DNA of 64,000 nt from Syncephalis fuscata S228 (GCA_025786725.1 JAHLTZ010000051.1:1-64000), one strand, 5' to 3'; counted from the stretch's first letter, positions 17,021 to 57,255 are shown. Made by a program: numbers and translations. Notes: generated by a model not told the origin, from the sequence alone.

Positions 17021-18287
17021 TTGGAAATTAAATGACTATTTTAATAACATTCGCGTAGTTGAGCTGCATTTGCGTTTTATTGAGCATGGGGCAAATGGCG
17101 AGTTCTATTAATGATCAAATTAGTAATTATATTATAATTTAATGGCCACATAACTAAATTTAATAACATTTAATTTATTGAACATGATGATGGGTAGTGA
17201 GTGACATCAAGGTCCAAAATACCCATCATCATAGATTCATTATCCAGTATGCATATATCATCACCGTATGTGTTATTGCTATGTATACCCGTCACTTTGC
17301 TTGATTAACATTAATACATGACTAGTTGACATGATCTAGTTTATTTATAAATAATTTCAATAAAACATAACTCCGTTCATATTCATGTTGTTTGTTCTAT
17401 CAATATAACCCATTGAACAAACTAAGTGCGATATGTTAATTTTTATTAATAAAAAAGTTAAAACTATACCGACAACGGCTATAGACAGCATATAGCCAAT
17501 ATATAATAAAATGATAAACATTATACTGAATATGCAACATTGAGCGAGATTAGCAATGTTCTAGTTATTGAGCATATATGCATGAGCAGATGACCAACAT
17601 TAGTCGACATTTTTTAATAACAGTGCTAGAACCAAACAGGCAACGGTAATAGCCAGCGCATAGTTACTAGACAATAAACTGATATACAATATAAAGAATA
17701 TACAGTGTAAAATGACAATTAGCTATGTTGAATCTAGTGAGTTATATGCATGATCAATGAACGGAATTAGTCGACATTTGTTAATAATAAATCTAAAACA
17801 AAGGTAAAACATTTTTGGATAGAGGATGGCTATGCGAGTATAGAATGACATATAAAATAATAAATGTACGGTAAGATAGCATATAAAACAATTTTAAAGT
17901 TATAGTGTATAAAATGTAATGAGTGGGATGAGTGAAGTATATTGCCGCATATAAACAATAAAATGTATTTAATATATCGTAGAATGCTATATAGTAGTAT
18001 GGGACAGGCTGGGAATGATATAGGTAAATAGAGTATATATGTGTACTGAATATATGCATACTGGATAATAAATCTACATTGATGAGTATTTTGGGCCCTG
18101 ATGTCACTCACCACCCATCATCATGTTTAATAGATTGGATGTTATTAAATTTTAGTCATTTGACCACCAAAAAACAATAAATGTGATGATGTAATGATTA
18201 AATAAACTCACCACTTGGCCCCATGTTCAATAGATTGAATGTGCAGTTCGATTGCGCGAATGTTATTAAAATAGTCATTTGACCCCC
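17021..18287. mobile_element. MITE/foldback-like repeat, mirror copy
   Basis: Reverse complement of 11261-12527. Confidence 0.65.
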
Positions 18288-19023
18288 AAGTTATGTTAAA
18301 TAGGTAATAAATTGTTTAATGGTATAATAGAAATAAAGAACTACTAACTGATATTATCTGTAATAAACTATAGTGATATGAGGCGTGCTGCAATAAAACC
18401 GAACAAAAAGAGCATTGGGCGGTCCAGTCGACAAGATCATGTCGCGTTTCGTCACGCGCAGCTCTTTCCTCTTTCCGTTTCTCGTCTCATCCACCTTCGC
18501 ACGCTGTCAAATTCTGTTCCTCATTCACACGCTGTCAGCTTCTGTCACCGCACCTCATCCTCACTCCCGTTGGTCTCTTCAATTCCGCTAGTATGTTTGG
18601 TACTGTTAGCATCTTTCTATTAATTCTGCACAATGCCTTCCAAAAGGACCACGAAGCGCACTAAAAGAGCGTCTTGTACAATCCAAGATAAGCTTATCCC
18701 GGCAGCAATAGACACATGTTCTCTCCGCCTCATATACCTTCTATCTGCTCTGCACCTATTGTGACATCTGCAGGGCGTCAAAGAGGGAACTATGAGCCAT
18801 TCCATGTCTCACATGCCTCTTTACCTGTCATTGCTGTCAAGCTGGCGCATCATGAGTCTACGTGACTCTGTCGCTCTCTCTTTTATCTATCTTTTACTTG
18901 CTTTCTCTTTCTCGGCCTTCTCGTTCTTACTCTACTACTACCTGACCTTGCCATTGTCTGTAACCTTGTTACTTTCTTTTTGTTGCAGATCAAGATCAAC
19001 CAGTCTCAGCAGCACCTGAAGTG

Positions 19024-21899: not shown

Positions 21900-22079
21900 A
21901 GATCGTTTAGAAATAACACTACAATTTCTAATTCGAATTCTCTACTTTTTTGTCCATATGCCTTACGTTCTAGCGTTTCTTCATTGTTTTATACGACTTT
22001 CGAGCGCTGCCAGCTGTCCTACTGCAACGCGTGTTAGACGCGTCGAGACTAATTTTTCACGCCGTCAACTGGTCATCGT

Positions 22080-22240
22080 ATACATCCTACTTGTGGTAAA
22101 TACAACTCAAAAAACGCAATACAAAAATATGCTCTGTAAGGATTAGTACTAATAGTATTGAAACAGTAGTTGATGTCGAAATAAACGTTTTATTGAAGAG
22201 TAAATACAAATTACTAATGAAACAGCTATACGAAAAGAAA
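22080..22240 (+). repeat. Diverged duplicate of the MULE transposase 3' tail (Zn-knuckle relic)
   Basis: Direct-repeat similarity to 24135-24270 (tttattgaa..tacaaattactaatgaaac.gctata); translates as TCGKYNSK..NTKIC. Confidence 0.65.
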
Positions 22241-22539
22241 GCGTATTGTTATAAATAATAACATAACATGATGAACATGTATAAATATGGCAGTATTTAC
22301 TATCGATATATTTATACAGATACTGAGTGTAATATTATATGATAAAAACAAATAATGCAAAATGAATATACAACGTTAGGTAAAAGTATAAATGAATACA
22401 TTTATTTAATAGTAGATATTATAGTGTACATTTGTAAATATATAAATAATTATTTAATGTAGTATAAAATTGGAAAATTAGAAAAATAGACAGTCGCTAA
22501 ATTTAATTTTATTAATTTTATTTAATAAATAAAATCTGC

Positions 22540-24187
22540 CAAATATCTACTAAACTATCTAAAAAAGCTATATTTAACAGTATTAAAAAACTGAGAGCCG
22601 CTGTTGACGAGTTTAAGCTTGTTAGCGGCTGTGATTTTAATAGGAAAAATAGTGATTCAACAAGATTGCAGCTTATTTGTCCTCATAAAGACCGTTACAG
22701 CAACAAATATCAGTTTATTTTGACTGCCAGAAAGCAGAAAACTGGCCTAATAAAGATTATCCAGTGCAATATTAAACATTTTAATGGTTGTTCATATGAT
22801 TTGGCAATAATACTATTAAATTTATTATTAAGTCCATTACAAATGATGTTACTACACTTTCAAATATGAAATTAAAAGATGCACAAGTGAAAGTATTAAG
22901 TACATATTTAATTATTTAATATACACTAACAATTATATCAGCTATTTATTTATTAAAGATTACCTTGTCAAATTCAAACACTTTAATACTGACTCTGTTC
23001 AGCACTTTTTGCAAAACTAGTCTGGTAATTTTGAAAGAACATTTTTATGTCATTTGGCATTTATCAAAGCTTACCAGTATACTCGTAAAGTACTGGTAAT
23101 TGATAGCTGCCATTTAAGATGTTCTTATAACGGTGTTACTCTTGCTGCAGTTGTTAAATATGGAAATAACAATATTTTTCCTTTGGTTGGTGCTATAATA
23201 TCTCATGAAATAAAAACAACTGGGTTTATTTTTTTAAACATTTATTAGATTTGATACTTGAATTAAAAGAAAAAACCAAGCTATTATTAGCGACAGAAAT
23301 AAAAAAATACATTCTTTGGTAAAAATTGTATTTCTCTTGGCGCGCTACTCTGCATGCATTGCTCATATCGAAAAAACAAATGCTGAATTTAAACAAAGCT
23401 TTAACTAGTAAAGAGGTTGCTGCTATTTATATTTATTTAAATTACATTCAAAGTACTAATTTATTTTCTAGATTTAATGAAAATGATACGGTCATTAAAT
23501 GAGCCAGCCTATAACAATCTAACAAACTCAGCAAAAACTGGGCTAGATTGTTTTTTAAATGCCAAGATTCGGCTGAGTTTAGATTCATCAGAACCATTGA
23601 ACTCGTGGATGAATGATCCTTGGAACAAATCCCATTATCAGTTTTTCACTGGATTTGTCATTAAAGTTGGAACTTTATTAAATAGCCGTAGGATTAAGTA
23701 TCCACAAGCTCAAGAATTGTTATCTAATAATACCCGATTGTTGTATAATTCAACGTTAACTGACGCCAATAATTATATAGTTGACAATTATTTGGATACC
23801 AAATTTTAAGTTAAAGATACTAAGCCGGTATTGTCAGAACAGTATATTTAACTAAAAAACCTGCACGTATGGGTACTGGGAAAAATAAAGCTTGTTTGTA
23901 GTCATGTAGCAATAATTTTGAAGAATCTTAAGCTTTTATTAAATAATTTTATTGATAAATCTTACACCATTGATTATTTAAGCAAATTATCTGTTTCATA
24001 TATTTGTCCGGTTGAAATAGAATCAATTACCGCAGATATTTTGTGTTTGCCACCGAAAATAACGAAAAAAGCCGGTAGACCAAGAGTTAAAAGAATCAGA
24101 TCTTGTGGTGAAGCTTTGGAAGCCTCGCAACGATATGCTTGTCGTAATTGTAGCTCAAAGGACACAATACAAGAACATACACTGTAA
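22540..24187 (+). pseudogene. Decayed MULE/MuDR transposase
   Basis: N-terminal C..C/H DNA-binding relic (LICPHK..HFNGC), MULE domain (KVLVIDSCHLRCSYNGVTLAAVVKYGNNNIFPLVGAII), SWIM relic (TCTYGYW..LVCSHVAI), PPKITKKAGRPRVKRI, CRNC. Confidence 0.85.
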
Positions 24188-24365
24188 ACGCTAGAATTAA
24201 TAATGTTGAAACAAGCACCTTTATTGAATAGCAACTACAAATTACTAATGAAACGGCTATAAAAAAGACGTGTCATTAAAGTTACAAGAAACGAAATGTA
24301 AAGCAAATAGAGAATGATTTTATTAATAAATAATTTAAAAAACATTGTATTTTTCCAATTTGCCC

Positions 24366-25495
24366 TAAATTTAATTATTTGACTTTAAATCACATTCAAT
24401 GGCTTAATAGCTTGTTTATTATCAGTGTAATAACAATAGCAGAAACAACTAGTATTATTATTAAATGGGAAAATGTCTGTATTTATATGAATGCAACTAA
24501 TAGTAGTATGTTAATAGATAAGCAGTGCTATATTTATTTATTTAAACAAAGGAATACATAAATAATGATATACTAATACAAACCAGATGACTATACAGCA
24601 TATTGTGGCCCTGTTCTTGCCAAATCCAAATATCTCTTAAATCTATATCTATTGAAGAGGGTCAGTAAACGAGATGAGCCACATGTGCCAATGATGTTTG
24701 CTGCTTGACTACACCGCAATAAGTAGTAGTTGTTCAAACAACATTTGATCTGCACCTTACTGCCATTTGTTGCTCGATATGCTTTACACTCGCTAGACGT
24801 CAATGATCACAAGATCGCTGCTGGTTGCTGTTATATGTACTAAGGTCGGTAAACGGGCGTGGTGAGGTGCGATACAGTTGCGCCTTTTGGCTATGGAGCA
24901 CTGGATATGTAGTGTTCTAGAAGCTACATATCACGCAGTAGGTACTCCAACATGTTGTAGAAGGTGCTTTTCTGCACATAGTTGATTGGTCTTTTGTATA
25001 GTAACATTGGTACGCCTACCATGTGTTTGTTTGCGAGGTTGCCTTGCTGAGTATCTGGCTGTTGAGGCAACATAAGATTTGCGCTTGAAGATATCTGATA
25101 TCTGATGGTGCGAGCAAATGTTGTTTGAACAACTACTACTTATTGCGGTGTAGTCAAGCAGCAAACATCATTGGCACATGTGGCTCATCTCGTTTACTGA
25201 CCCTCTTCAATAGATATAGATTTAAGAGATATTTGGATTTGGCAAGAACAGGGCCACAATATGCTGTATAGTCATCTGGTTTGTATTAGTATATCATTAT
25301 TTATGTATTCCTTTGTTTAAATAAATAAATATAGCACTGCTTATCTATTAACATACTACTATTAGTTGCATTCATATAAATACAGACATTTTCCCATTTA
25401 ATAATATACTAGTTGTTTCTGCTATTGTTATTACACTGATAATAAACAAGCTATTAAGCCATTGAATGTGATTTAAAGTCAAATAATTAAATTTA
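24366..25495. repeat. Nested foldback, mirror copy
   Basis: Reverse complement of 4080-5210. Confidence 0.9.
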
Positions 25496-27798
25496 ATACA
25501 TTCAGCAGTTGAGATAGACAATCGCTCTATTGAACATAATGATGGGTGGCGAGTGACATCAATCAGCACATACTCATCATCATAGATTTATTATCTCATA
25601 TGCATATACTCAGTACACATGTATCATTCCTATTCTATTCCTCACGACTATATATCATTTTATAACATACTAGACACATTTTATCGTTTATACACACTAA
25701 CACGCTTCATTTATTTCACTCATTACATTTTATGCACTATAATGTTAACACTGTTTTATATACTTTCTTGCCGTACATTTATCATTTTACATAGCATTTT
25801 ATACTCGCCTAGCCTTCTTCAATCCAAAACCATATTTACGTTTGTTCTAGCTTCATTATTAATGAGGATCGGCTCATTTCAACTCATTTACTCGTGGATA
25901 TATGCTCAGTAGATTTAACACCGCCATTTACATTTTTTCATTAAATAGTCACTTTAGTATATTTTATTTTATCATATAGTAGCTATGCTATATTCAAAAC
26001 TATTATTTCTTTATTTTCAGCTTTATTAGTCGTAAATTTTAGTTTATTCTGCTCATTTTATCCACTAAGTTATATGCGCTATGACTTTGACATGGCTATT
26101 CATACACTTTCAGCAAGATCATGACTATAAGAATGATACTGAGCAAATATATAATGCATATTGTTTATTCTATAATAAATATAATATGCTTTACAGCTAC
26201 TTGAACATTGGTACAAAGATAGATATAATAACAACAAGATTATAGACATTACTGAACGTGCCGTGATGTAACTATCAGTGTGTAAAATACAATGATGATC
26301 AACTAGCTGCCATTCTTGCATATAGCTACAATATTAATAGATCAATAAAAATATATTATCTATGATACGTTACCAGTCAATTGTAAATATATTTTGTCAC
26401 TTGAAATACTGAGTGTATTTGCTGTTTTATATGACATTGCTCAATTTAAATGCATAAACGTTTAACTGCCTAGAAATAATTAAAGTGCCAATAATTTACT
26501 AACACTCAGGCAGTTTTTGATCTATATCACAACATTTAAATTAGTTACAAATGATATTTTAATACCGTTGAATATAACTACAGGCACAAGTATCTTATAT
26601 ACGTCATTGTTTTAGCGATCATTTATTTGCTCTTGTATCTAGTATAGTAAATAAATTACAACCATATATACTAAGCACATTGCTATACACATTTATGCAT
26701 GTATGTTAAATATAACAAAAGCTATCAGCTATTGATACTGCAAAACAACAAGCTATTGCAAACTGTTGTAGTGGTGAGCTGGCTACAATAAGCTAACTGA
26801 TATGTATCTGCATCAGTAACAAGACTACGGTGATTACAACGCACCTATCAACAAATCATCTTTAAATCCAAGTTTCAATATAAACGTGCTGTATAAAGCA
26901 TTGACATTATTTATGGTTGCTAAAAGATACAGATATACTGGAATATAAATCAGCCAAATAAGTAATGAAGCAATCGTATAAATAGAAATAAACCGTATAT
27001 TATGAATATTGGAATATATACAAGTGGCTTGAATAAATACCATTATATGTTATTGCAGCTACATGTATTGTATAAATGATTTGTTATTGTTTCAGTCGTG
27101 TACACGCGTTATTATTACACGATAGTCATGGTGGTGGCGTATTTATGAAAAGTAAACACAAGATCACGTGCTATGTGCCTATTTGTTGTTGTGACCACGC
27201 CATCCAGTTCATCGGACTATTTACCGGTTTAGCAAGGCGTACACAGACCATTTGATATTCATTTCCGATGCAGGCCTGTTTTGGCTAGTGAGATCGTATT
27301 GAGCTGCACAAGACGATAGTGATACTACATGTTGTATATACAAATACCCAATACAAACAAACGACAATACAAACTACTAGGTATAAATGTAAAATAGTTT
27401 AGTTATTTACTGTGTAAAAGCCGCGCAAGATCAATCTGTAGTGCTCTATAACACTTTCTGTTTATTTTCTTCCACAACTTCGTTTACTCACTCACTACAT
27501 TATTATAGTTTACAAAGTATCTTAAAAGTAAGCAAGTGTTGCGTTTTGTAGTTGCGTTTGCACTGGATAGTGAATGATACTATAGTTTCTGTGCCAAGTT
27601 GGTTTGTTGCGTAGCACTTTGCGTTGTGCATATTTGTTTGTTTGGCTGCGCAATGCATCCTTAGCACTTACGTATTACCATTCATCCACTTGAACGGATA
27701 GTTCGGCTTGTTGTACTGTGGCAGAGCTTGCGTTTTGTATATTGTTTAAATGGTGTTAATTGCATGTTGTGCATTTGCTACAGCAAAAGTAGTTTATT

Positions 27799-28401
27799 AT
27801 GGCTACTCCATTCCATACGCGCGGTAGTTCTCAAACTGCCAAGCAGCCTATGCATAATCGTAAACGCACATTCTCTGAGGCGTATATGATGCAAGGCTGC
27901 AAGACGACCTTGAAAAAGGTCCGTGTGACGAAGCTGATATCGCGGCCAATACTTGCTTCGTCTGCACCATCCTTTGCCACGCCTGTCTTTAACTTCTTTG
28001 TAAATTACCACTCGTCAAATTGGACTGTCAGCGATGCAGCTCCAATGGAAGATGTTAAAACAGCCAATGCCTTTACTTTCGAGTCGCACTATTGCTCGCC
28101 CAGCGGTGCTGCCAACAAGGCAATGCCAATGGAAGGTGTTGAGTACACCAGCGCGCCCCAAGCTGCAGAGGCAAGATCAAGCGAGGATGAAGCGGTTCGA
28201 AAAGTAGCTGCTCCAAAGTCGCGCCGCAGTCTTGTGCACCGCGCTAGCGAGAAAGCACCAGTTAGTGCTAGCGATGACGAGAAGAAACAGGCGGATGTGG
28301 CCGAGGAGGAGCCGGTCGAGAGAGAAGAACTCGAAGAAGTAGTTGCACCAGGGCCACGAATTATCACAGTGACTTTTGATGACGACGAAGAAGAAGCATA
28401 G
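27799..28401 (+). CDS. Hypothetical 200-aa protein (right-arm copy)
   Basis: Mirror of 1173..1775 with four amino-acid differences; a ctacag splice acceptor lies just upstream of the ATG. Confidence 0.6.
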   Translation: MATPFHTRGSSQTAKQPMHNRKRTFSEAYMMQGCKTTLKKVRVTKLISRPILASSAPSFATPVFNFFVNYHSSNWTVSDAAPMEDVKTANAFTFESHYCSPSGAANKAMPMEGVEYTSAPQAAEARSSEDEAVRKVAAPKSRRSLVHRASEKAPVSASDDEKKQADVAEEEPVEREELEEVVAPGPRIITVTFDDDEEEA

Positions 28402-29035
28402 GCAAAGTAAGTAGAATATAAATTAAATAGAGCAATACTAATACTAATTTAGGCATCATTGCCATAAGGCGGGACCAGCAGACAAGCGGCACTGTACACC
28501 GGGCTCTGTTGTTCAATTATAGAACTTGACAGGGACTGGGAACAGTAGCCACTTGTCTTTTTGGTGGGCTAGCCACTTTTGCCGAATCACATTTTGTTTT
28601 ATTTTGTTTTATAGGTTTTGCACCAATAAATCAGTTTATAATTATTAAAATTTACTACAAATGAATACCAATACTAATGTTTAGACAATAGCTATTTAGG
28701 CAACAAGATACAACAACGCCATTTCTAAACTACTAATCGATTTAAATTAATATATCATTTATTATAAGTAACATACTAGTGAATATTAATATTTACACCC
28801 AATCAATATTGTTCATTAGATTTACAACAACTAGAAATCACTGTATTACTTTATACAAATATATAATCACTTGACTAGTACAAAAACTGTTACATAATAA
28901 ATACATTCAGTTCGTCTACACAAGTGGCATTATATACTATATGGCAATTGCAAACTTGTAACACTTGTTGCTGTTTAATTGTACGTATTATTATACACTT
29001 TGTTTTTATAGGAAATTAATTAACCAAGTATAATC

Positions 29036-29708
29036 TGGGATTCAAATGAATACATCTGATAGTATTGCGCAATCGAATTAGGCATTTATTTTATTGAGCA
29101 TAAAGCTAAGTAGTAAGTTATATTGCTTATCAGAATACTTATTATTATAAATTTATCACTTGGTATGCATAGATGTATGAACAGGTGAATTAAATGAATT
29201 GAGGCTTAATATTAATAAAACCAACGATACATAGCTATTGGATCTGAATAATACTCGATTGCTATATAATAAGATGTTGTACAACAGGACGAATACATAC
29301 TGATCAAAACATGAATAGCGGTGAAGCTATTGTGTATATATGCATAAGCAAATTTAAAGAAATGAGTTGGGATTTAGTAACACCAAAGCTAAAATAAAAC
29401 TAAAAACATTTTTGGATAGAGAAAAGCAGAATGTGTATAGAGTGATATATAATAGAAAGAATATAAAATATAAAAAGTGGTGTTAAACCTATATACGCAT
29501 AACACAATAAATGGAATGCGTAGATTGCATTGCAAACTATAATGAATAAAATACGTTTATTATATTATAGAATGATATAGGTAGATAGAGATATATGCAT
29601 ACTGGATAATGGATCTATGATGACGAGTATTTGATGATTGATGTCACTCACCATCCATCATCATGTTTAATAGATTGGATGTTATTAAATCTAGTCATTT
29701 GACACCAA
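29036..29708. mobile_element. Degenerate short member of the GGGGTCAAATGACT repeat family
   Basis: gggattcaaatgaat..tgcgcaatcgaa at 29036 and the inverted end ..tagtcatttgacacc at 29708. Confidence 0.55.
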
Positions 29709-41105: not shown

Positions 41106-43237
41106 CCTTCCTAATCGCATGTGTCCCCCCGCTAACGATGAAAACGAGCCAGTAATCGACGGTGGGCAAGACGCGGGATGGTCGCTGGCTGGCTGATGTT
41201 CTCTATCCCCTTCGTACAATGGAATATGTGCGCGTCTACGTCAATCTAGCGCTTTTCATCAGCCCGATTTTGTCTCTTGTCTTTTATTTGACCCTATGGT
41301 TATTGGCTATTTCCCATTTTACTATATATGAATAACTTGTTAACATGCATTTATATTTCTAATCGTTAATTCTTGTTTATTAATGTTTTAATGCTAAAAT
41401 GACTGCAATTGATAACATTCGCATAACTGAACTAAAAATCAGTTCTATTGAACATGGGCCAGGTGGTGCAAACTATTGATGCTCAAATAATTTAGTAATG
41501 TATTATGATTTGGGGTCAAATGACTATTTTAATAACATTCGCGCAATCGAACTGCACATTCAATCTATTGAACATGGGGCCAAGTGGTGAGTTTATTTAA
41601 TCATTACATCATCACATTTATTGTTTTTTGGTGGTCAAATGACTAAAATTTAATAACATCCTATCTATTGAACATGATGATGGGTGGTGAGTGACATCAG
41701 GGCCCAAAATACTCATCAATGTAGATTTATTATCCAGTATGCATATATTCAGTACACATATATACTCTATTTACCTATATCGTTCCCAGCCTGTCCCATA
41801 CTACTATATAGCATTCTACGATATATTAAATACATTTTATTGTTTATATGCGGCAATATACTTCACTCATCCCACTCATTACATTTTATACACTATAACT
41901 TTAAAATTGTTTTATATGCTATCTTACCGTACATTTATTATTTTATATGTCATTCTATACTCGCATAGCCATCCTCTATCCAAAAATGTTTTACCTTTGT
42001 TTTAGATTTATTATTAACAAATGTCGACTAATTCCGTTCATTGATCATGCATATAACTCACTAGATTCAACATAGCTAATTGTCATTTTACACTGTATAT
42101 TCTTTATATTGTATATCAGTTTATTGTCTAGTAACTATGCGCTGGCTATTACCGTTGCCTGTTTGGTTCTAGCACTGTTATTAAAAAATGTCGACTAATG
42201 TTGGTCATCTGCTCATGCATATATGCTCAATAACTAGAACATTGCTAATCTCGCTCAATGTTGCATATTCAGTATAATGTTTATCATTTTATTATATATT
42301 GGCTATACGCTTTCTATAGCCGCTGTCGGTATAGTTTTAACTTTTTTATTAACAAAAATTAACATATTGCACTTAGTTTGTTCACCGATTTGTATTGATA
42401 GAACAAACAACATGAATATGAACGGAGTTGTTTTATTGAAATTATTTATAAATAAACTAGATCATGTCAACTAGTCATGAATTAATGTTAATCAAGCAAA
42501 GTGACGGGTATACATAGCAATAACACATACGGTGATGATATATGCATACTGGATAATGAATCTATGATGATGGGTATTTTGGACCTTGATGTCACTCACC
42601 ACCCATCATCATGTTCAATAAATTAAATGTTATTAAATTTAGTTATGTGGCCATTAAATTATAATATAATTACTAATTTGATCATTAATAGAACTCGCCA
42701 TTTGCCCCATGCTCAATAAAACGCAAATGCAGCTCAACTACGCGAATGTTATTAAAATAGTCATTTAATTTCCAAATAAAATAGTTAAATAAATTGCTGC
42801 AAATAGAAAGAATAGGAATAGACCAGTTATTATCAAATAATTAATTAGTAGACCGCTATATGGTCCTAGTATTTTATACTAAACACTACTAGTTAATTAT
42901 AATGGTTATATAACAAATAATCTCCGTTAGCATCATTATAATTCTAATTTAAGAAGACATGGAACACTAGCCGTTTATTAAATTGAATCTATCTATCTAT
43001 TTATACAAGTTATATTTAAAGTTGTTTTGTTATGGTTAATAAAGAAAAAAGGTCAAGCAATTAGACGTCTGTATATTAATATTTAAGCATTTGGTCGGGT
43101 TAAATTCCCTAAAGCTTTATTTAGAAAGAGAATTGTACAGATATAGTAAACATCTGAGCTTGAGTTTATCGCTGTTTGCGTGCAGTAGATTCTTCTTCTT
43201 CTCTGCGTCGTTGCATGTCTGCTGGGCTAAATGCTTA

Positions 43238-43711
43238 AGTGTTTAAATAAACAAAGATCTGAAATATTAAAGTTTGCTAGCTTTAATGCTATTAAACGTG
43301 TACATGCTACTGATTTGATGAACGACGTCAATTAAGTGATTTGCGTTTATATAAATTAAATAAACTGTTATTTATCCATATGATATTTGGTAGACTTTGG
43401 CGGCTATTGTCCTGAATGTCGTACGCCATTATTATCCCAAAGCTTTTGCGAGCAGCGTAAACGCTATAGAAAAGGTATTGAATGTGCCCTGTGTCATATC
43501 ACTGTACGAGGTAAGCTACTATTTATAAATTATAATAGCGGAACAGAACGAGTATAGTGATTAATGATAATAAAGGACTTGTAAATGTTTGTCTAGTTTA
43601 TCAGCATGGTGGCCATCAACATCATATACAAGAATGTTTAAACAAGGCAACGCAGACTGTCCCACTGGTTGTGGATGTATTTGTGTATTAGCCTGTGGAG
43701 AGTTTAAATAG
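43238..43711 (+). pseudogene. WDR59/SEA3 3' fragment, P2 left arm
   Basis: GYCPECRTP..KGIECALCHITVRG | ..HGGHQHHIQE..DCPTGCGCIC; closer to the RING consensus than the P1 copy. Confidence 0.82.
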
Positions 43712-46665
43712 ATATAATAATAAATAATAAATATAGTACCAAATAATAATACTACGATCATGATATTATAATCATATTGTTATAATAATGTGATTAAGAA
43801 ATCCACCATGTAATTAAACAATAATAAATGCGCTGGATAGTAGCGCCAATTACGGATAACAAACGACTAACGCGAGGATATAGCCAGCAAATGCTTGTTA
43901 GTTATAAACAGACAGGTGGCTGCATAGACTGGCACATTAATTTAATGCTGAAATATACAAAGTATTGAAAGTCTAATATTAGCTATATTTGCTATACAAT
44001 GATAGTGTTATTCTGTATCAATAAAGTGAATTACCAGTCTCTAGCTCCATCTTATTGCTAGGTAATACCATACAGAGTATTGAGTTTATTATAGTTCAAC
44101 TGTGGTAATTAATGGCAATTGTACATTAAATTTACTATCAATAACTGTATCAACTAACCAATGAGTTGTATTCTGTGTTAAAATAAGTGCTAATAAGCAT
44201 TAAAAGATAAAGTTATAGAATACCATTACAACAAGATGTTACTTGATCATATAGTTTATAGCTTATAAAATTATAAATGCAATAAAATCATTATTTATTT
44301 GTGATGAACACCATTTACAATTATTTTGATTCGCTCGCTTTTACTTTTAATTAGCAATGATCATCATACAAAGTTTTGTTTATTCAATATAGCCAAAATC
44401 ATTGTAAAACACCTTAACATTGATGTACAATAGCCATGAACATTGTAAAATGGCATTATTTGTTATTTTTATTACACATAACCAACATACAATTTAATAT
44501 TTTTTATTTATAATAACTATACTCATATTTAAAAGTGATTATAGCGTAGGTGGTAAAAATGCAATGTAATGTGAGTTAAGCAATAATAATGGTAATAATT
44601 TAATTAATAAACCAGCCATAAGTTTATGTATGACTTTACGTATAATAAAGCAAATTACTTGATATTTTGTACAAGTATTTATATGGCATATAGATAGCTG
44701 CTGGCAAAGTATATCATTATTGCATTGTGTGATGATGTAGTAATTGCAATAGTATACTAATAAATGTACAAAAATGTCAGTTTTTAGGCAATCATGGCTT
44801 ATATAATTAATATACAGCAAAACAATTGCCGGATTCGAGTTTTCCATGCTTGAATATACCGTTTGATATAGTTTATAGAAAAATAAATTTTGCAAAAAAA
44901 GTTGGTCAAAAATGCGATTTACGTTATTTTAATTTATTTAGTAAAGCGTTGATGCTATGATGTATAACTTTACGTATAATAAAGCAAATTACTCGATATT
45001 TTGTACAAGTATGCACATAGTACATATGTAACTACAGGCAAAGTATACCATTATTGCATTGTGTGATGATGTAGTAATTGCAATAGTATACTAATAAATG
45101 TACAAAAATGTCAGTTTTTAGGCAATCATGGCTTATATAATTAAAATACAGCAAAACGATAGCCAGATTCGAATTTTCCATGCTTGAATGTACAGTTTGA
45201 TATAGTTTATAAAACAATAAATTTTGCAAAAAAGTTGGTTAAAATGCAGTTTACGTAAATAGTTGACAAACATCTAATCTATATGTATATTAATAACATA
45301 AATTGTCACTGTATGTAGATATTTATACATACTACCTCGCTGCTATCTTTGTTTTGACGTTGTAAAGTGCTTTGTGTTTACTTTATATTGAATACTTTTT
45401 CAGTATTAAAATTTCTAAAATTATGGAATTTACTTCTTGCTAACAACTATTTACGTAAACTGCATTTTTGACCAACTTTTTTTGCAAAATTTATTTTTCT
45501 ATAAACTATATCAAACGGTATATTCAAGCATGGAAAACTCGAATCCGGCAATTGTTTTGCTGTATATTAATTATATAAGCCATGATTGCCTAAAAACTGA
45601 CATTTTTGTACATTTATTAGTATACTATTGCAATTACTACATCATCACACAATGCAATAATGATATACTTTGCCAGCAGCTATCTATATGCCATATAAAT
45701 ACTTGTACAAAATATCAAGTAATTTGCTTTATTATACGTAAAGTCATACATAAACTTATGGCTGGTTTATTAATTAAATTATTACCATTATTATTGCTTA
45801 ACTCACATTACATTGCATTTTTACCACCTACGCTATAATCACTTTTAAATATGAGTATAGTTATTATAAATAAAAAATATTAAATTGTATGTTGGTTATG
45901 TGTAATAAAAATAACAAATAATGCCATTTTACAATGTTCATGGCTATTGTACATCAATGTTAAGGTGTTTTACAATGATTTTGGCTATATTGAATAAACA
46001 AAACTTTGTATGATGATCATTGCTAATTAAAAGTAAAAGCGAGCGAATCAAAATAATTGTAAATGGTGTTCATCACAAATAAATAATGATTTTATTGCAT
46101 TTATAATTTTATAAGCTATAAACTATATGATCAAGTAACATCTTGTTGTAATGGTATTCTATAACTTTATCTTTTAATGCTTATTAGCACTTATTTTAAC
46201 ACAGAATACAACTCATTGGTTAGTTGATACAGTTATTGATAGTAAATTTAATGTACAATTGCCATTAATTACCACAGTTGAACTATAATAAACTCAATAC
46301 TCTGTATGGTATTACCTAGCAATAAGATGGAGCTAGAGACTGGTAATTCACTTTATTGATACAGAATAACACTATCATTGTATAGCAAATATAGCTAATA
46401 TTAGACTTTCAATACTTTGTATATTTCAGCATTAAATTAATGTGCCAGTCTATGCAGCCACCTGTCTGTTTATAACTAACAAGCATTTGCTGGCTATATC
46501 CTCGCGTTAGTCGTTTGTTATCCGTAATTGGCGCTACTATCCAGCGCATTTATTATTGTTTAATTACATGGTGGATTTCTTAATCACATTATTATAACAA
46601 TATGATTATAATATCATGATCGTAGTATTATTATTTGGTACTATATTTATTATTTATTATTATAT

Positions 46666-47139
46666 CTATTTAAACTCTCCACAGGCTAATACACAAATAC
46701 ATCCACAACCAGTGGGACAGTCTGCGTTGCCTTGTTTAAACATTCTTGTATATGATGTTGATGGCCACCATGCTGATAAACTAGACAAACATTTACAAGT
46801 CCTTTATTATCATTAATCACTATACTCGTTCTGTTCCGCTATTATAATTTATAAATAGTAGCTTACCTCGTACAGTGATATGACACAGGGCACATTCAAT
46901 ACCTTTTCTATAGCGTTTACGCTGCTCGCAAAAGCTTTGGGATAATAATGGCGTACGACATTCAGGACAATAGCCGCCAAAGTCTACCAAATATCATATG
47001 GATAAATAACAGTTTATTTAATTTATATAAACGCAAATCACTTAATTGACGTCGTTCATCAAATCAGTAGCATGTACACGTTTAATAGCATTAAAGCTAG
47101 CAAACTTTAATATTTCAGATCTTTGTTTATTTAAACACT
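46666..47139 (-). pseudogene. WDR59/SEA3 3' fragment, P2 right arm
   Basis: Reverse complement of 43238-43711. Confidence 0.8.
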
Positions 47140-49599
47140 TAAGCATTTAGCCCAGCAGACATGCAACGACGCAGAGAAGAAGAAGAATCTACTGCACGCA
47201 AACAGCGATAAACTCAAGCTCAGATGTTTACTATATCTGTACAATTCTCTTTCTAAATAAAGCTTTAGGGAATTTAACCCGACCAAATGCTTAAATATTA
47301 ATATACAGACGTCTAATTGCTTGACCTTTTTTCTTTATTAACCATAACAAAACAACTTTAAATATAACTTGTATAAATAGATAGATAGATTCAATTTAAT
47401 AAACGGCTAGTGTTCCATGTCTTCTTAAATTAGAATTATAATGATGCTAACGGAGATTATTTGTTATATAACCATTATAATTAACTAGTAGTGTTTAGTA
47501 TAAAATACTAGGACCATATAGCGGTCTACTAATTAATTATTTGATAATAACTGGTCTATTCCTATTCTTTCTATTTGCAGCAATTTATTTAACTATTTTA
47601 TTTGGAAATTAAATGACTATTTTAATAACATTCGCGTAGTTGAGCTGCATTTGCGTTTTATTGAGCATGGGGCAAATGGCGAGTTCTATTAATGATCAAA
47701 TTAGTAATTATATTATAATTTAATGGCCACATAACTAAATTTAATAACATTTAATTTATTGAACATGATGATGGGTGGTGAGTGACATCAAGGTCCAAAA
47801 TACCCATCATCATAGATTCATTATCCAGTATGCATATATCATCACCGTATGTGTTATTGCTATGTATACCCGTCACTTTGCTTGATTAACATTAATTCAT
47901 GACTAGTTGACATGATCTAGTTTATTTATAAATAATTTCAATAAAACAACTCCGTTCATATTCATGTTGTTTGTTCTATCAATACAAATCGGTGAACAAA
48001 CTAAGTGCAATATGTTAATTTTTGTTAATAAAAAAGTTAAAACTATACCGACAGCGGCTATAGAAAGCGTATAGCCAATATATAATAAAATGATAAACAT
48101 TATACTGAATATGCAACATTGAGCGAGATTAGCAATGTTCTAGTTATTGAGCATATATGCATGAGCAGATGACCAACATTAGTCGACATTTTTTAATAAC
48201 AGTGCTAGAACCAAACAGGCAACGGTAATAGCCAGCGCATAGTTACTAGACAATAAACTGATATACAATATAAAGAATATACAGTGTAAAATGACAATTA
48301 GCTATGTTGAATCTAGTGAGTTATATGCATGATCAATGAACGGAATTAGTCGACATTTGTTAATAATAAATCTAAAACAAAGGTAAAACATTTTTGGATA
48401 GAGGATGGCTATGCGAGTATAGAATGACATATAAAATAATAAATGTACGGTAAGATAGCATATAAAACAATTTTAAAGTTATAGTGTATAAAATGTAATG
48501 AGTGGGATGAGTGAAGTATATTGCCGCATATAAACAATAAAATGTATTTAATATATCGTAGAATGCTATATAGTAGTATGGGACAGGCTGGGAACGATAT
48601 AGGTAAATAGAGTATATATGTGTACTGAATATATGCATACTGGATAATAAATCTACATTGATGAGTATTTTGGACCCTGATGTCACTCACCACCCATCAT
48701 CATGTTCAATAGATAGGATGTTATTAAATTTTAGTCATTTGACCACCAAAAAACAATAAATGTGATGATGTAATGATTAAATAAACTCACCACTTGGCCC
48801 CATGTTCAATAGATTGAATGTGCAGTTCGATTGCGCGAATGTTATTAAAATAGTCATTTGACCCCCAAGTTATGTTAAATAGGTAATAAATTGTTTAATG
48901 GTATAATAGAAATAAAGAACTACTAACTGATATTATCTGTAATAAACTATAGTGATATGAGGCGTGCTGCAATAAAACCGAACAAAAAGAGCATTGGGCG
49001 GTCCAGTCGACAAGATCATGTCGCGTTTCGTCACGCGCAGCTCTTTCCTCTTTCCGTTTCTCGTCTCATCCACCTTCGCACGCTGTCAAATTCTGTCCCT
49101 CATTCACACGCTGTCAGCTTCTGTCACCGCACCTCATCCTCACTCCCGTTGGTCTCTTCAATTCCGCTAGTATGTTTGGTACTGTTAGCATCTTTCTATT
49201 AATTCTGCACAATGCCTTCCAAAGGACCACGAAGCGCACTAAAAGAGGTCTTGTACAATCCAAGATAAGCTTATCCCGGCAGCAATAGACACATGTTTCT
49301 CCGCATCATATACCTTCTATCTGCTCTGCACCTATTGTGACATCTGCAGGGCGTCAAAGAGGGAACTATGAGCCATTCCATGTCTCACATGCCTCTTTAC
49401 CTGTCATTGCTGTCAAGCTGGCGCATCATGAGTCTACGTGACTCTGTCGCTCTCTCTTTTATCTATCTTTTACTTGCTTTCTCTTTCTCGGCCTTCTCGT
49501 TCTTACTCTACTACTACCTGACCTTGCCATTGTCTGTAACCTTGTTACTTTCTTTTTGTTGCAGATCAAGATCAACCAGTCTCAGCAGCACCTGAAGTG

Positions 49600-52465
49600 A
49601 TGTCGGCGGTCTGGGTCAAGCTTCTTCAAGCTGCACCGAACAGTTCACGATTTGCAAAGCTAGGCATTGGTAAAGTCCTAGTCGAGAGCAAGATCTCCAG
49701 CCGAAAACTCAATGTTGCTGACCTTCGCAAAACACTTATCACCAATGTTGCTTTCAGAAACAAGCTGGTGGGCATGGGCTCGTCCGAACTCCAAGTCTAC
49801 AAGAATGAGGCTGACGCCGGCGATCCGGGAAAAGCTATCAAGTTAAGCAAGAAACTCAGCGAGCTTATAGAAGAAAACGGCTACGACAACCCGCTAATCG
49901 TTGTAACGCCACCCAAGCCTGGTAAGTAGTTTTGCTCTAAAGACCAGCAGTCAATATAATTCCTTTCTCTGCTGTTCCCCTTGCTTTACATCTAAGTATG
50001 TAGTGCTAATATTTAATTCATCTTCCCATTACTCCGATATAATCCATGTGTCTGTCCTCTCTCGTGCCTCTACTTCGCTTTCTGACCATTTTTCAGATTG
50101 ATTACGTCCTAGTGAATATAATTAACCTTTTCTAAATACTCACTTGTGTAACCTTGTACTGATTACCTAACGTTATTTTTTATTACCTTTTTTGATCATG
50201 TAGCAACATTTATCCAGCAGACGTCTGTTCCGTATGATCACATTGAGAAGGAATTGAGAATTATTTTCCAAGGCCTCAACCATCATTTCACCCGCCCTGT
50301 CGATCCAAAGGATGTTGAAGCTTCGCAAAGAAGTATACTAGGACCCTTTTACAAAAAAAGTCTACCATATCGCCAAACAGCAACAAATATAAGTCTAGTG
50401 ATGTTAGGAATTAAATTGAACAAGCAAGCAAGCGACAGTAATGGCAAGACTCTTCGTTCAATTGTCGAGAACGACATCGGAAAATTGAGTAATTATTGTA
50501 CAGTGGCCATGGTTGCCCCGTCCGCTTCAGGAAAGACTGCAACAGTCATTGACCTTGCAAGCAAGCATTTTGTCATTTATTGTGTCTGTTGCATACCGAA
50601 TTTAATCGCTGCGGAGTTTATGGACCAAAACTTTATTACGCTTGTAGAGGATGTCGAGGAAATATACTGGGCCATTGTTAACAGGAATCAGGGAAGTTGG
50701 TACGGGCCACAGGACATTGATTCCGAAGTAAAATCACGAGTGGTAGAACGCGTCAAGCTCGAATTCCTTGCACGAATGCTCTTCCTTCAGTATCTCCTGG
50801 AAAACAACCCTGATTTAAAGCCGCAGCAGTTCTTCCATGAGCAGATTACTGCAGGTAGCTTGACTATCGGCGAGCTAGTTAGCAAGCTGCGGAAATACGA
50901 CAACTACACAATCCAAGCCATGCTTAATAAAGTCCAAACCAAGCTTCGGTCCCATTTATCTTCCAAAAAACTTGGAATGGTAATTGCTCTGGATGAAGCT
51001 CAGGTTGCGGTGACTAGGATCTTATCCAATAAGCTTATTTCTCCGTCCGCTTTGATCAAGAACAAAGATACCCTTTTTGATGACAAGAATCAAATACAAC
51101 CTCGCTTCCGCCGCGGCTTTCTTACGCTTTTATCAGCTACTCTGCGCAATATGCAGGCGACACTGGTAATACTAGGCACAGCAACCTCATTGCAGGATAC
51201 CGAACATGTGTACTCGGCCATCGCCAAACAAACCAATTTTTTGAGGATAACGAACTTTCCGAGCTTCGATGAAGGCGATGTGAGCAGGCTATACTCGGAT
51301 CTAATCGACATGTCAGGCTGTGAAATTCCGCCTGCCAAACTCCGCCTGCTAACAGGACGACCTCGATTTTCCATTTTCGTCATCAACCGTCTCGCCGCGT
51401 TTCGCGCTTTTCAAGACTCTAAACAAGCTACTTTGGAGCACGCTATTTACAAGTCGATTGAGTATACGATGAGTGGTCTTCGGGCCATGATACACACCAT
51501 TCTTGACAACGATCGAACAGGCGAGGCAACTCGGCTTCTCTCTCGGATGGTAATGGCTTATCATCTTCACGGTGGCAAAGTATCCTTCTTGAGCAAGGGC
51601 CAGTTTGACTTTGTGGACAAGGCTCTGTGCAAACTACGATCACATTACGGTACATTCACTTGGTCATGGACGAGCCAATAGTTGTTGAGACAGTGCAGGA
51701 AGAGCTAAAGGCTTAGACAATAATCCGGTGTTCTTGGAGCACCTAAATCAGATGTACCAGGTTGTCACCAACTTTGGCATCACTTCAGCTTCAAAAAGAG
51801 ATGCGTTGGGGCCACTTGTTCGTCAATCACTTCAACGCTTCAATGGCTACCGTCTTGTTGGTCTTCCTTTTCTTCAAGGCGTCACATTGCCCGCCTGGTG
51901 CAACAATCTCCAGCTCCAAATTGATGAGATTAACACTGCCAACGGATTTGGATACACCGACAGTGGTGTCCGTGCAGATCTCGCCTTCCTCACCGAATGT
52001 CCTCCGAATAAGATGCTTATTGCAATAATGGCACATGTCCGGACGGAGTCTGGTTTTTTTCTGACAAACGTTACGCCGGCTCTCTTGCGATCAAGCTCCG
52101 CAGCGACCGTCTGAAGCAGTCCACCCACGAATCAAACGAAACTTCCAGCAATATTCGAAGTTGCTTTTTGAAACAGAGTCGTGCCAACGTGATTCAATCA
52201 CTGGCAGACATTCGACATGACTTTGAGGCTTCGGGTACTCCGTCCAACCTCAGGGGCATCCTCCGCATCCATCTTGATTCCCTGGCGTCCGGACGGTAAT
52301 CCAGTTACCTATATCAAAAAGGACCCTGCGACTGGTATTGAGGATGTAATGGTGTATATAGACCTTTCGAATCTGGACGATTTTTTTTTCGAGGGCATCG
52401 CAGAAAACAAGGACGATATGGTCAAATTGAAAAAGCTGATCAAATTCGTCTCCATCTCAGAGTAA
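49600..52465 (+). CDS. Crinkler (CRN)-family effector, third diverged/mosaic copy with frameshifts
   Basis: Same two-exon structure; Walker A variant APSASGKT; single-base deletions near 51651, 51714, 52023 and 52272-52292. Confidence 0.85.
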
Positions 52466-53104
52466 AGATCGTTTAGAAATAACACTACAATTTCTAATTC
52501 GAATTCTCTACTTTTTTGTCCATATGCCTTACGTTCTAGCGTTTCTTCATTGTTTTATACGACTTTCGAGCGCTGCCAGCTGTCCTACTGCAACGCGTGT
52601 TAGACGCGTCGAGACTAATTTTTCACGCCGTCAACTGGTCATCGTATACATCCTACTTGTGGTAAATACAACTCAAAAAACGCAATACAAAAATATGCTC
52701 TGTAAGGATTAGTACTAATAGTATTGAAACAGTAGTTGATGTCGAAATAAACGTTTTATTGAAGAGTAAATACAAATTACTAATGAAACAGCTATACGAA
52801 AAGAAAGCGTATTGTTATAAATAATAACATAACATGATGAACATGTATAAATATGGCAGTATTTACTATCGATATATTTATACAGATACTGAGTGTAATA
52901 TTATATGATAAAAACAAATAATGAAAAATGAATATACAACGTTAGGTAAAAGTATAAATGAATACATTTATTTAATAGTAGATATTATAGTGTACATTTG
53001 TAAATATATAAATAATTATTTAATGTAGTATAAAATTGGAAAATTAGAAAAATAGACAGTCGCTAAATTTAATTTTATTAATTTTATTTAATAAATAAAA
53101 TCTG

Positions 53105-54758
53105 CCAAATATCTACTAAACTATCTAAAAAAGCTATATTTAACAGTATTAAAAAACTGAGAGCCGCTGTTGACGAGTTTAAGCTTGTTAGCGGCTGTGA
53201 TTTTAATAGGAAAAATAGTGATTCAACAAGATTGCAGCTTATTTGTCCTCATAAAGACCGTTACAGCAACAAATATCAGTTTATTTTGACTGCCAGAAAG
53301 CAGAAAACTGGCCTAATAAAGATTATCCAGTGCAATATTAAACATTTTAATGGTTGTTCATATGATTTGGCAATAATACTATTAAATTTATTATTAAGTC
53401 CATTACAAATGATGTTACTACACTTTCAAATATGAAATTAAAAGATGCACAAGTGAAAGTATTAAGTACATATTTAATTATTTAATATACACTAACAATT
53501 ATATCAGCTATTTATTTATTAAAGATTACCTTGTCAAATTCAAACACTTTAATACTGACTCTGTTCAGCACTTTTTGCAAAACTAGTCTGGTAATTTTGA
53601 AAGAACATTTTTATGTCATTTGGCATTTATCAAAGCTTACCAGTATACTCGTAAAGTACTGGTAATTGATAGCTGCCATTTAAGATATTCTTATAACGGT
53701 GTTACTCTTGCTGCAGTTGTTAAATATGGAAATAACAATATTTTTCCTTTGGTTGGTGCTATAATATCTCATGAAATAAAAACAACTGGGTTTATTTTTT
53801 TAAACATTTATTAGATTTGATACTTGAATTAAAAGAAAAAACCAAGCTATTGTTAGCGACAGAAATAAAAAAATACATTCTTTGGTAAAAATTGTATTTC
53901 TCTTGGCGCGCCACTCTGCATGCATTGCTCATATCGAAAAAACAAATGCTGAATTTAAAACAAAGCTTTAACTAGTAAAGAGGTTGCTGCTATTTATATT
54001 TATTTAAATTACATTCAAAGTACTAATTTATTTTCTAGATTTAATGAAAATGATACGGTCATTAAATGAGCCAGCCTATAACAATCTAATAAACTCAGCA
54101 AAAAACTGGGCTAGATTGTTTTTTAAATAGCCAAGATTCGGTTGAGTTTAGATTCATCAGAACCATTGAACTCGTGGATGAATGATCCTTGGAACAAATC
54201 CCATTATCAGTTTTTCACTGGATTTGTCATTAAAGTTGGAACTTTATTAAATAGCCGTAGGATTAAGTATCCACAAGCTCAAGAATTGTTATCTAATAAT
54301 ACCCGATTGTTGTATAATTCAACGTTAACTGACGCCAATAATTATATAGTTGACAATTATTTGGATACCAAATTTTAAGTTAAAGATACTAAGTCCGGTA
54401 TTGTCAGAACAGTATATTTAACTAAAAAACCTGCACGTATGGGTACTGGGAAAAAATAAAGCTTGTTTGTAGTCATGTAGCAATAATTTTGAAGAATCTT
54501 AAGCTTTTATTAAATAATTTTATTGATAAATCTTACACCATTGATTATTTAAGCAAATTATCTGTTTCATATATTTGTCCGGTTGAAATAGAATCAATTA
54601 CCGCAGATATTTTGTGTTTGCCACCGAAAATAACGAAAAAAGCCGGTAGACCAAGAGTTAAAAGAATCAGATCTTGTGGTGAAGCTTTGGAAGCCTCGCA
54701 ACGATATGCTTGTCGTAATTGTAGCTCAAAGGACACAATACAAGAACATACACTGTAA
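53105..54758 (+). pseudogene. Decayed MULE/MuDR transposase, third copy
   Basis: Same fragments as 22540-24187. Confidence 0.85.
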
Positions 54759-55424
54759 ACGCTAGAATTAATAATGTTGAAACAAGCACCTTTATTGAAT
54801 AGCAACTACAAATTACTAATGAAACGGCTATAAAAAAGAAGACAAGTCATTAAAGAATGTTTAATTTGTAATGAACGCCATTAGAAAAAACAAAGTGTGG
54901 AGCAAATAGAGAATGATTTTATTAATTAATAAATTTAATGAATTTTTAAAAAGAATTTATATGATAAAATTAGAAACAATGTATGGCAAAGACTGCATAT
55001 GAATAAATTGCAGACGCTTCGGGCTTTTCTAAAGAATTGTTCCAAATATGCATATGGCGGCTCGAGGGCAAGGGGGATTAAATAAGGCGTCGGCCACCAA
55101 TGGCCTTCAGAGTCCATAAGAATATGGCGTGGAGAGGCGAAAGCCGTCCTGGAGATTGTAAGTAATACGTACGCAAATGTACCAAGAAAAAGCAGGCGTG
55201 CTTGTTGGATATTGAAACAAGCGGGAAAATAAGAAATGGTAATTGATTTTTGTACAGCTGATGAAATAATGTATTGTATTCATAAATGCTACATAGCAAC
55301 GGAAGCTGGCAAAAAGGGGGAGACGAGAACTCAACCTAAAGCGACGACCAGGAGTATATTTGGAAAATCTATGTTGAAAGTTGGAAGTTGCGTAAGAGTT
55401 GTGTGTCCCAGGAAAGAGTGCACT

Positions 55425-56080
55425 TTATCCATCTTGGTGGAAGTGCAATTCGTTCAGTTCATTGTCCACCAAATTTAATTTTTTTAATTTTGCGCAGTTA
55501 TCAAATTCAGCTCAAATAAGGTTACATTCTTGGGCATAAGCTTCTTTTAGTCTAGTCAAATTAAAGCAAAACAGCTGTTCTATCATATCCATATAACAAT
55601 ATAGCTTTTCTAGATTGGGAAAGTCTTTAACATTCAAAGCTCTAAGGTTATTGTTATTACAATAAAAAGTTTTCAATCCTTTGCAATTGGCTATCTCTAA
55701 CTCTTTTAACCAATTAAAAAAAACATAGATGCGCTCTAATTTGGAAAAATTATTGAGTTTCAATGCTTCAATCTCGTTGTTGCAGCCTTGGATATTGACT
55801 AGATTAGGGCAATTCTCAATGATGACACCACTCAATCCGCAGCCATCAAATTTAACAACCTTTAAGTTGGGACAATTTTTGATGACTAGTGTTTTGCCCT
55901 TTCATCCTTTATCATTGTCGTCCAAGCATATACAGTCTCCCTCTTATCCATCAGATTCATTTTGAACAGCCTTTATGTTTTGATACTGCTCTTCTATTTA
56001 TACTACATTTCTCTTTTGGTTCTTAATGATATCAGTAACCTCTTTCAAATAAGCTTCATAAGACCTGCGAACTTCGCCGG
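55425..56080 (-). pseudogene. Decayed intronless leucine-rich-repeat gene
   Basis: Repeats NCPNLVNIQGCNNEIEAL, NCKGLKTFYCNNNNLRAL, DFPNLEKLYC; the pattern continues in frame past TGA codons at 55904 and 55514; in-frame TAA codons upstream. Confidence 0.8.
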
Positions 56081-57255
56081 AGATACTACTATCTCTTCAA
56101 ATACCTTTCTAACTTTTTTGTAAATTTCGTTTTGTTCTACAATAATAATTGGTGATATGATACATAATCGTGAGCAATAGAAAGAGAGAGCAAATTGTCA
56201 ACCAACGCTCTATCTATAATATAGTTTTAGCATAAAACTGATGCTGCAGTACCAAGAATGTGCGAAAACCGACAGCCATGCCTAAAGTTAACACTGTAAG
56301 GCGAATATTGACTCATTAAAACAGCGTGGAACGGAAAAAGAGCCAGAATGAAATGCTCGAAACTTGATTCTTGAACAATGTTAAATGTTCACTTTGTCTG
56401 GTTTTATTGCAGTGCGCCTCATATTATTAAAATACAGTAACAAGTATAAACATATGTAAATGTATAGAATATGAATAGAAATAATTTACATACTTTCTAT
56501 TATTAGTAAAATCTAACTAGTTATATGGCAGTTCTCCATGTAGGCAAAAAATAGCATTTGAAATATGACAAAAAGTGTATAATTTAGTGTGGGAAAATTA
56601 GAAAATTATAGTTACCAAATATGGTAATGGCACAAGTAAAAAACAGCTATTACAACTACACTCTGCAACCTGGCGCTTTAAATAATAAGCGTATACTATC
56701 CATTGGCTTTTTAGTACTTTTATTCAATAAAATATGGTGCTCAACACCAGTTTAAACAAAAAATGTCTTTTATCGTTTCAGTCTTATTAACATTTGTGTA
56801 ACACTTTGGAGTACTTGCCTCATCACGCCATTGGACGCACAGTCGGTCCAGTGCATTTTTCTTTTGCCGTCGCAGCTAGAGGGTAGCACAGCAGATTTTT
56901 TGGCTATTGCTCATCAACGACCAATGGCAATACGACGATGTTTAGTAGAATGGGCAATAGAGATATGGCATTCTCATTGGGGCGATAGATAAAATATGAA
57001 GATCATCTAGAAAAAAAACGGTGTATGTATCACATATTGTCTTGCCCACGTTGTTCCAACTGAACAAGAATAGAAGCACTTTTGCTACTAGTACCGCTTT
57101 TCCATTTTTCGCACGAACTCTCTATTTAACCGACGTGCTCGTGACCCCACGACCGTTGCAACGTTCGTTTCAACTTTTCCTATTGACACTCGTTTGCTAT
57201 TGTAGTTCACACATACTACTGCTCTACTCCTCCATTACTACTACGCCTGACTCCT

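Follow-up and report, generated by a model that had tools for sequence, protein, structure and literature searches.

Among described transposons, the Sola elements, the Tc1/mariner and IS630 elements, and the Pack-MULEs are closest to the element considered here. Sola2 elements produce target duplications of the form AWWT (PMC3627910) and form chimeras with Fanzor in dictyostelids (Bao and Jurka 2013, PMC3627910). Sola elements are 2-9 kb in size (PMC10741241) and are reported to be rare in fungi (PMC5751038). Pack-MULEs hold host-type genes between the ends of Mutator-like elements (MULEs), and these genes are moved, if at all, in trans. We analysed 64,000 nucleotides of Syncephalis fuscata S228 (GCA_025786725.1 JAHLTZ010000051.1:1-64000), called the window below. 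S. fuscata is a parasite of other fungi. A unit at 48959-56420 of the window has terminal inverted repeats (TIRs). Between them lie a copy of a gene for a Crinkler, a member of an extensive family of modular effectors or toxins, the relic of a MULE transposon, and a leucine-rich repeat (LRR) frame. We read the unit, with a probability of roughly 60%, as an old, non-autonomous, gene-carrying member of a family of TIR DNA transposons that is now immobile.

The two ends are visible by direct reading. Inverted arms of 46 nt at 48950-48995 and 56384-56429 are 80% complementary, and the 37-nt end at 48959-48995 is identical to the reverse of 56384-56420 at 30 of 37 positions, with agreement at 25 of the 27 outermost nucleotides. 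Their best local alignment (41 nt, score 47) lies far above that of 200 shuffles, none of which exceeded 30. The end 21-mer, with up to three mismatches allowed, occurs four times in the window and was absent from 100 shuffles. Both termini are GAG with ATAT directly outside, and the 9-bp flanks are unlike each other. A sequence-only reading of this DNA had described these ends and flanks and had noted that the arms bracket the Crinkler copy, the MULE relic, and the LRR frame, all of which is borne out. Its further claim of patchy similarity continuing inward is unsupported, because beyond about 45 nt the likeness of the two sides is not significant against dinucleotide shuffles (z of 1.7 and -0.6). 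A decayed ancient palindrome as the source of the arms is ruled out, as the similarity stops at about 45 nt. No known RNA families were found in 48500-56900.

The same end is present in soil metagenomes. When metagenome contigs were scanned for the end, with the final T of the flank fixed in the pattern, 42 stretches were returned, and about 31 of them hold a true end. These 31 ends are nearly invariant over about 45 nt; their outer flanks are unrelated and their interiors diverge. The recurrence of one end with unrelated flanks and interiors marks the arms in the window as the ends of a true mobile family. The end reads GGGGCGTGCTGCAAC... and is seen in full form at L074:11394-11441 on the minus strand. 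Compared with the metagenome ends, the left end module of the window is 83-88% identical over 32-43 nt and the right end 85-91% identical over 45-58 nt. The 4-mer outside the end is ATAT in 25 cases, ATGT in two, and AAAT, ATTT, GTAT, and CAAT in the others, the last T being forced by the search pattern. As is usual for repeats, many of the ends are close to a contig terminus. Back-to-back pairs of ends occur in L065:1463-1548 and L091:1005-1110, spaced by ATAT or by 18 AT-only bases, and could be adjacent insertions or a joined-ends form.

Some metagenome contigs have genes at the end. In at least nine of them, a gene of about 230 amino acids (44-60% identity) lies just inside it, followed in fixed order by a second gene and by a gene of about 600 amino acids with a DUF7869 domain. 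Each of these family genes has three to six in-frame TGA codons and almost no TGG, and the TGA codons align with TGA or TGG in homologues; the three genes are therefore read in genetic code 4. L062 is bacterial (prfA, rpsB, rpsF-ssb), its frames merge under code 4, and a solo end lies in one of its intergenic spacers. We use the label endobacterium for the code-4 contigs because of code 4 and the bacterial gene set of L062; for the others, a mitochondrial source is possible. Neither the end motif nor the gene of about 230 amino acids was found in 185,579 bacterial and archaeal species genomes. The two standard-code contigs L072 and L075 have instead a different gene, for a Crinkler-family protein of 650 amino acids, with 140-270 nt between the gene's terminus and the transposon end. 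Outside the end, L075 further contains a copia gene. In L086, a code-4 contig, an LRR gene adjoins the end. Thus, the association of Crinkler and LRR genes with these ends, which the sequence-only reading had seen in the window, recurs elsewhere.

Within the S. fuscata genome, a relaxed search pattern applied to the whole 29.4-Mb assembly gave 13 true ends, every one on copies of a single composite. This composite consists of the Crinkler block and the MULE relic, with the right block in some copies, and is found at a dozen loci with 78-94% identity. The window has three left ends, and others are located in contig C113 and the C90/C97/C361 group; right ends are found in the window, at C350:438301, and in the C15/C339/C350:558498 group. 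In these three left-end and three right-end lineages, the copies cease to be homologous precisely at the outer edge and have unrelated flanks, so that the 75-nt left end module, for example, bounds the unit with a different outer flank each time. Two additional "ends" in C57 and C105 were rejected as chance matches inside a coding sequence. The genome-wide search proposed by the sequence-only reading did find further ends, but only the 48959-56420 copy is paired.

The window lineage is 83% identical to the C15/C339/C350 lineage, and both internal joints, from the Crinkler flank to the MULE and from the MULE to the right block, are common to the two. The joined form is therefore old. Furthermore, the C90 group, which is 90-93% related to C15, retains the left end, and C15 and C350 retain the right end. 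Given the shared joints and a close group with bearers of either end, a two-ended ancestor is the simplest explanation. We infer a common origin of the two ends in one element, as well as the size of the target duplication. The original order would have been the left end, a 640-nt leader, the Crinkler gene, a non-coding subterminal block of about 700 nt, and the right end. A 2.4-kb MULE would then have inserted within the unit and lost both of its own ends, and a 725-bp LRR fragment would have entered the right block. The composite would have spread to at least nine loci, where most copies would have lost one end, apparently by recombination at MULE sequences. Recent copies arise through palindromic block duplication that ignores the ends. 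Today the unit is immobile: its Crinkler copy is broken as assembled, no family transposase was found in the assembly, and copying proceeds by block duplication.

The MULE relic is well explained by the genome's own MULE family. Members of this family (L051:3911-6322 in C90; L052, L053, L054, L056) are 2.4 kb long and well kept. Their terminal repeats of 205 bp (L051:3911-4115 and 6118-6322) are 93% identical between arms and begin GGGMAATTTTG..., and true copies are flanked by 9-bp duplications such as TACTTTTTA and TAAAATTTA. Since this family has GGG-starting 205-bp repeats and 9-bp duplications, the ends of the unit, which are unrelated to these repeats, are not Mutator ends, as the sequence-only reading had supposed. 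In the unit, the relic is without its left 205-bp repeat, and of the right one about 135 nt are missing from the outer side; its matches to PF10551 are weak. The AT-rich flank of the Crinkler gene stands where the left repeat of the MULE would be. About 30 further partial MULE copies are scattered through the genome.

The right block is non-coding. Across four lineages, its outer part lacks an open frame, the substitutions show no 3-periodicity, and the lengths of the indels are other than multiples of 3; a coding potential of the block was rejected on this comparison. The LRR frame on the minus strand (PF12799, E 1.7e-8) has an in-frame TGA at 55514 and a TAA at 55427. The 725-bp piece that holds it is missing from four other right-block copies, which have a 155-nt AT-rich stretch instead. 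Therefore, the Crinkler, MULE, and LRR parts do not form one cargo set, as had been proposed: the MULE is a truncated intruder and the LRR piece is present only in the window copy. The LRR relic shares 49.6% amino acid identity with the LRR gene of L086 (E 1.5e-33), and no homologues of the piece were found within the length band searched. It is unique in the genome except for the short contig C259 (5,930 bp), which is 100% identical to the window over the 1.9 kb compared (54600-56501). The coordinate offset implies a span of about 50572-56501, and C259 is most likely assembly redundancy, not a second copy.

The candidate for a transposase is the DUF7869 protein of the metagenome contigs. Its structure model has a predicted local distance difference test score (pLDDT) of 90.8, with an RNase H-like transposase/integrase core and conserved acidic residues E44, D78, and D120. 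The conserved motifs are DNCxGQNKN and GHTKFxPD. In a wide structure search with the core, the best 28 matches were all transposases or integrases; Mos1 and Metnase matched best, with Mos1 at the top (Z 8.1, root-mean-square deviation 2.5 A, 140 residues). From the model, DUF7869 appears to be an as yet unnamed transposase family, and its protein would probably be the transposase of this end family. This would be the first candidate function for DUF7869. Clustered at 50% identity, the family still numbers more than 3,300 representatives, and its atlas neighbours are mostly animal proteins. No match to a Tc1/mariner (DDE_3/Tc1-type) Pfam domain was found in the DUF7869 pieces. The Tc1-like gene in L063 is located outside the motif and is bounded by different ends of its own. 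None of the three family genes, including the matching transposase, was found in the 29.4-Mb assembly. The look for an intact transposase with the same TIRs that the sequence-only reading had proposed thus yielded none in this assembly. The idea of a Pack-type carrier mobilised in trans holds in one part: nothing inside the unit could move it, so that movement in trans is required. As for the other part, the assembly has yielded no partner transposase.

Superfamily membership is undecided between Sola-like and Tc1/mariner-like. As in Sola2, the TIRs are short, the 4-mers outside are AT-rich (ATAT, AAAT, ATTT), and members share ends but are wholly different inside. The unit falls within the size range of Sola, and the candidate transposase has D-D-D-type conserved acidic residues. 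Unlike Sola, the autonomous-looking members here use genetic code 4, and the 4-bp duplication is a putative one, read from the flanks. The likeness to Sola ends pointed out by the sequence-only reading is upheld in that ATAT, AAAT, and ATTT fit AWWT. However, the ATAT match at both ends carries no weight because 25 of the 31 metagenome ends have ATAT, and TA fits about as well. In fact, TA stands directly before TGGGG at 26 of these ends and at both ends in the window, the other five lacking it. A TA flank, end repeats of a few tens of bases, and a Mos1/Metnase-like core would suit Tc1/mariner and IS630 as well. In contrast to these, the family has an extra conserved A one base outward and three genes, not one. 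The unit resembles Pack-MULEs in its host-type genes between transposon ends, but its ends are unrelated to the genome's MULE ends, it has no 9-bp duplication, and it carries a complete gene, spliced and with the leader included, instead of gene fragments.

Several observations weigh against this account. Both ends are present only in the 48959-56420 copy, and a second two-ended copy was not found among at least nine other related loci; a single insertion event is therefore deduced, not seen. A two-ended element was not found in any metagenome contig either. Apart from the end itself, the right block and the left leader have no sequence in common. The pairing could be recombinant, because MULE sequences recombine in L036 and in window copies 1 and 2. 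DUF7869 and the end occur together over their length in one contig only (L073), with fragments in L069, L071, and L090, and the related DUF7869 locus L106 has no such end. A Z of 8 is close to the background of the structure search tool, and Foldseek gave no significant match with the DUF7869 model. The end motif is absent near the Crinkler homologues of four Mucoromycota genomes, those of Mortierella, Gamsiella, Funneliformis, and Linnemannia.

One alternative is that the two ends came from different insertions of the same family, one fragment with the left end, leader, Crinkler, and MULE and another with MULE, right block, and right end, were joined by homologous recombination in MULE copies, and were then copied. 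In L036, the left repeat of a MULE is intact, and the body attached to it matches the C15 copy at 92-99%, which makes L036 a recombinant at the left side of the MULE. Window copies 2 and 3 are 98-100% identical per 150 nt up to 54849 and unrelated afterwards; at the equivalent of this point, copies 1 and 2 pass into a proper MULE terminus and copy 3 continues into the right block. MULEs thus act as recombination sites, all other loci are single-ended, and the likeness of the two sides over only some 45 nt also suits such an origin. On the other hand, lineages with just 83% identity have both internal joints in common, so that the joined form is old, the C15-related group with its left-end and right-end bearers is most simply derived from a two-ended ancestor, and L072 and L075 have a Crinkler gene by a right-hand end without any MULE. 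We regard a recombinant origin of the pair as rather unlikely, though it has to be taken seriously.

A second alternative is that the 45 nt are a regulatory or processing site on conflict genes, for example a 3'-end signal or a core promoter whose flank resembles a TATA box. In nearly all cases the flank is ATA, and many neighbouring genes point to the motif with their 3' ends 70-350 nt off. In X1, the one RNA-like run examined, contigs span the leader at 49094-49290 and from 49488 onward, and in C113 a 5.7-kb X1 contig crosses the left end, 143 nt into the unit, beside a divergent gene. This gene encodes an AMP-binding enzyme (L034:1-1503), and starts at a distance of about 90 nt from the outer side of the end, with transcription in the direction leading away. 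However, the motif occurs in either orientation relative to genes and in back-to-back pairs, and it adjoins a non-coding block in the window and lies in a bacterial spacer in L062. The homology of the copies ends exactly at its outer edge, unlike that at regulatory sites. We therefore consider a regulatory site quite improbable. That the unit is a Pack-MULE or Mutator element once moved by its own relic transposase can practically be set aside, although the relic lies inside the unit and many Mutator ends start with G-rich triplets, because the relic belongs to the 2.4-kb family whose unrelated 205-bp repeats are missing from the unit and the 9-bp flanks do not match.

With the unit read as an old transposon copy, the history of its Crinkler gene can be considered. 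The open reading frame at 50254-51681 has a P-loop stretch and matches Crinkler-family proteins, the top match being the S. fuscata protein P0001, which corresponds at 99-100% to a different Crinkler copy of the window, running from 10524 down to 7668. We found 108 relatives, many with the N-terminal domain PF20147; exon 1 of the window Crinkler gave no match to this domain in the window scan or in the genome-wide family scan. In copy 3, which belongs to the unit, exon 1 lies at about 49600-49923 and the intron at about 49921-50202, spliced in run X1 with GT..AG borders. The X1 contigs at the Crinkler gene probably derive from the other copies. With P0001 in tblastn, exon 1 is intact at 92.6% identity and the remainder reaches 68.9%. 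Copy 3 has nine stops in the homologous frame at 51679-52339 and a frame shift near 52382-52395, and it is broken as assembled. Some of these stops and frame changes may be one-base assembly errors, since X1 contigs have an extra base at several places. The leader has a 444-nt deletion relative to C90-type copies, with a 13-nt overlap at the deletion joint.

Over 2.28 kb, the DNA of exons 2-4 (50191-52435) has 75% identity with a contig of Mortierella sp. 14UC (L059:4949-7207), which does not share exon 1 and the leader. In a quick tree from a short search, in which P0001 is the sole Zoopagomycota sequence, P0001 nests with a branch support of 100 in a clade whose other members are Mortierellaceae proteins and unnamed metagenome proteins. 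This suggests that the gene was transferred from a host-like fungus into the mycoparasite and joined to a local first exon. At 50159-51559, copy 3 has a cluster of 184 private substitutions of all kinds, not only C-to-T. The surrounding sequence is nearly identical to copies 1 and 2, and the cluster has the appearance of a conversion patch donated by a diverged paralogue.

Mollicutes-related endobacteria and their Mucoromycota hosts have been described to exchange genes, among them LRR and kinase genes (Longley et al. 2023, PMC10507103). Here, too, LRR genes are common to code-4 contigs and fungal nuclear DNA, and the window LRR relic retains an in-frame TGA. In that report no vehicle is named, whereas here the shared genes adjoin a common transposon end, and the recipient is a mycoparasite outside Mucoromycota. 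It is tentatively possible that one family, with the 45-nt end and DUF7869, occurs in code-4 fungal endobacteria, Mucoromycota nuclei, and their parasite, and ferries Crinklers and LRR genes. If so, the Crinkler module of the window, nested in Mortierellaceae, and the TGA-bearing LRR relic would have arrived on such vehicles. We know of no explanation for the spread of Crinklers between distant eukaryotes. The same end beside Crinkler and LRR genes in unrelated genomes, together with a candidate transposase, would offer a testable vehicle for it. The window alone gives a modest outcome, a dead and rearranged copy. The features of the unit are listed in Table 1.

Table 1. Parts of the unit at 48959-56420 and the segmental duplication that overlaps it (window coordinates).
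Feature	Position	Strand	Basis or remark
Left end module	48955..49029	+	Inverted-repeat evidence; TIR begins at 48959 (GAGGCG...), preceded by ATAT
Non-coding leader, left end to Crinkler start codon	49030..49599	+	Copy comparison
Crinkler gene (P-loop nucleoside triphosphatase type), third copy in the window	49600..52465	+	tblastn with P0001
AT-rich 3' flank of the Crinkler gene	52466..53107	+	Common to other composite copies; GC 27%
Relic of 2.4-kb MULE	53108..54984	+	Corresponds to L051:4172-6187 at 82-87%
Inner right subterminal block, non-coding	54985..55168	-	81-88% to the C15, C339, and C350 copies
Insertion private to the window copy, with LRR frame 55427-55901	55169..55893	-	Copy comparison
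Outer right subterminal block, non-coding	55894..56383	-	Four-lineage comparison
Right end	56384..56424	-	Inverted-repeat evidence; TIR finishes at 56420, followed by ATAT
Recent segmental duplication with the left end and most of the unit	44960..54839		Corresponds to 14378-24268, 97% over 9.9 kb

The 9.9-kb duplication extends 4 kb past the left end and has a mirror image at 5308-14684, in a palindrome of 14.7 kb. This near-perfect palindrome (8-14684 against 14863-29566, 99.4%) bears two mirror-image Crinkler copies. A second one, at 41512-44924 against 45453-48865 (99.9%), stops 90 nt short of the left end of the unit. No paralogous empty site was found; the right flank is unique, and on the left the unit is flanked by the tip of a dispersed repeat element. 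This 1.25-kb element at 47611-48859 has 233-bp inverted ends (81%) and belongs to a family of at least 40 copies. A distance of 19 nt separates the tip of this element from the left end of the unit, and a like tip adjoins the MULE left repeat in L036. Two foldback elements of 1.13 kb, with 391-bp arms that are 99% alike, lie at 4080-5210 and 24366-25495, just beyond the MULE end of copies 1 and 2.

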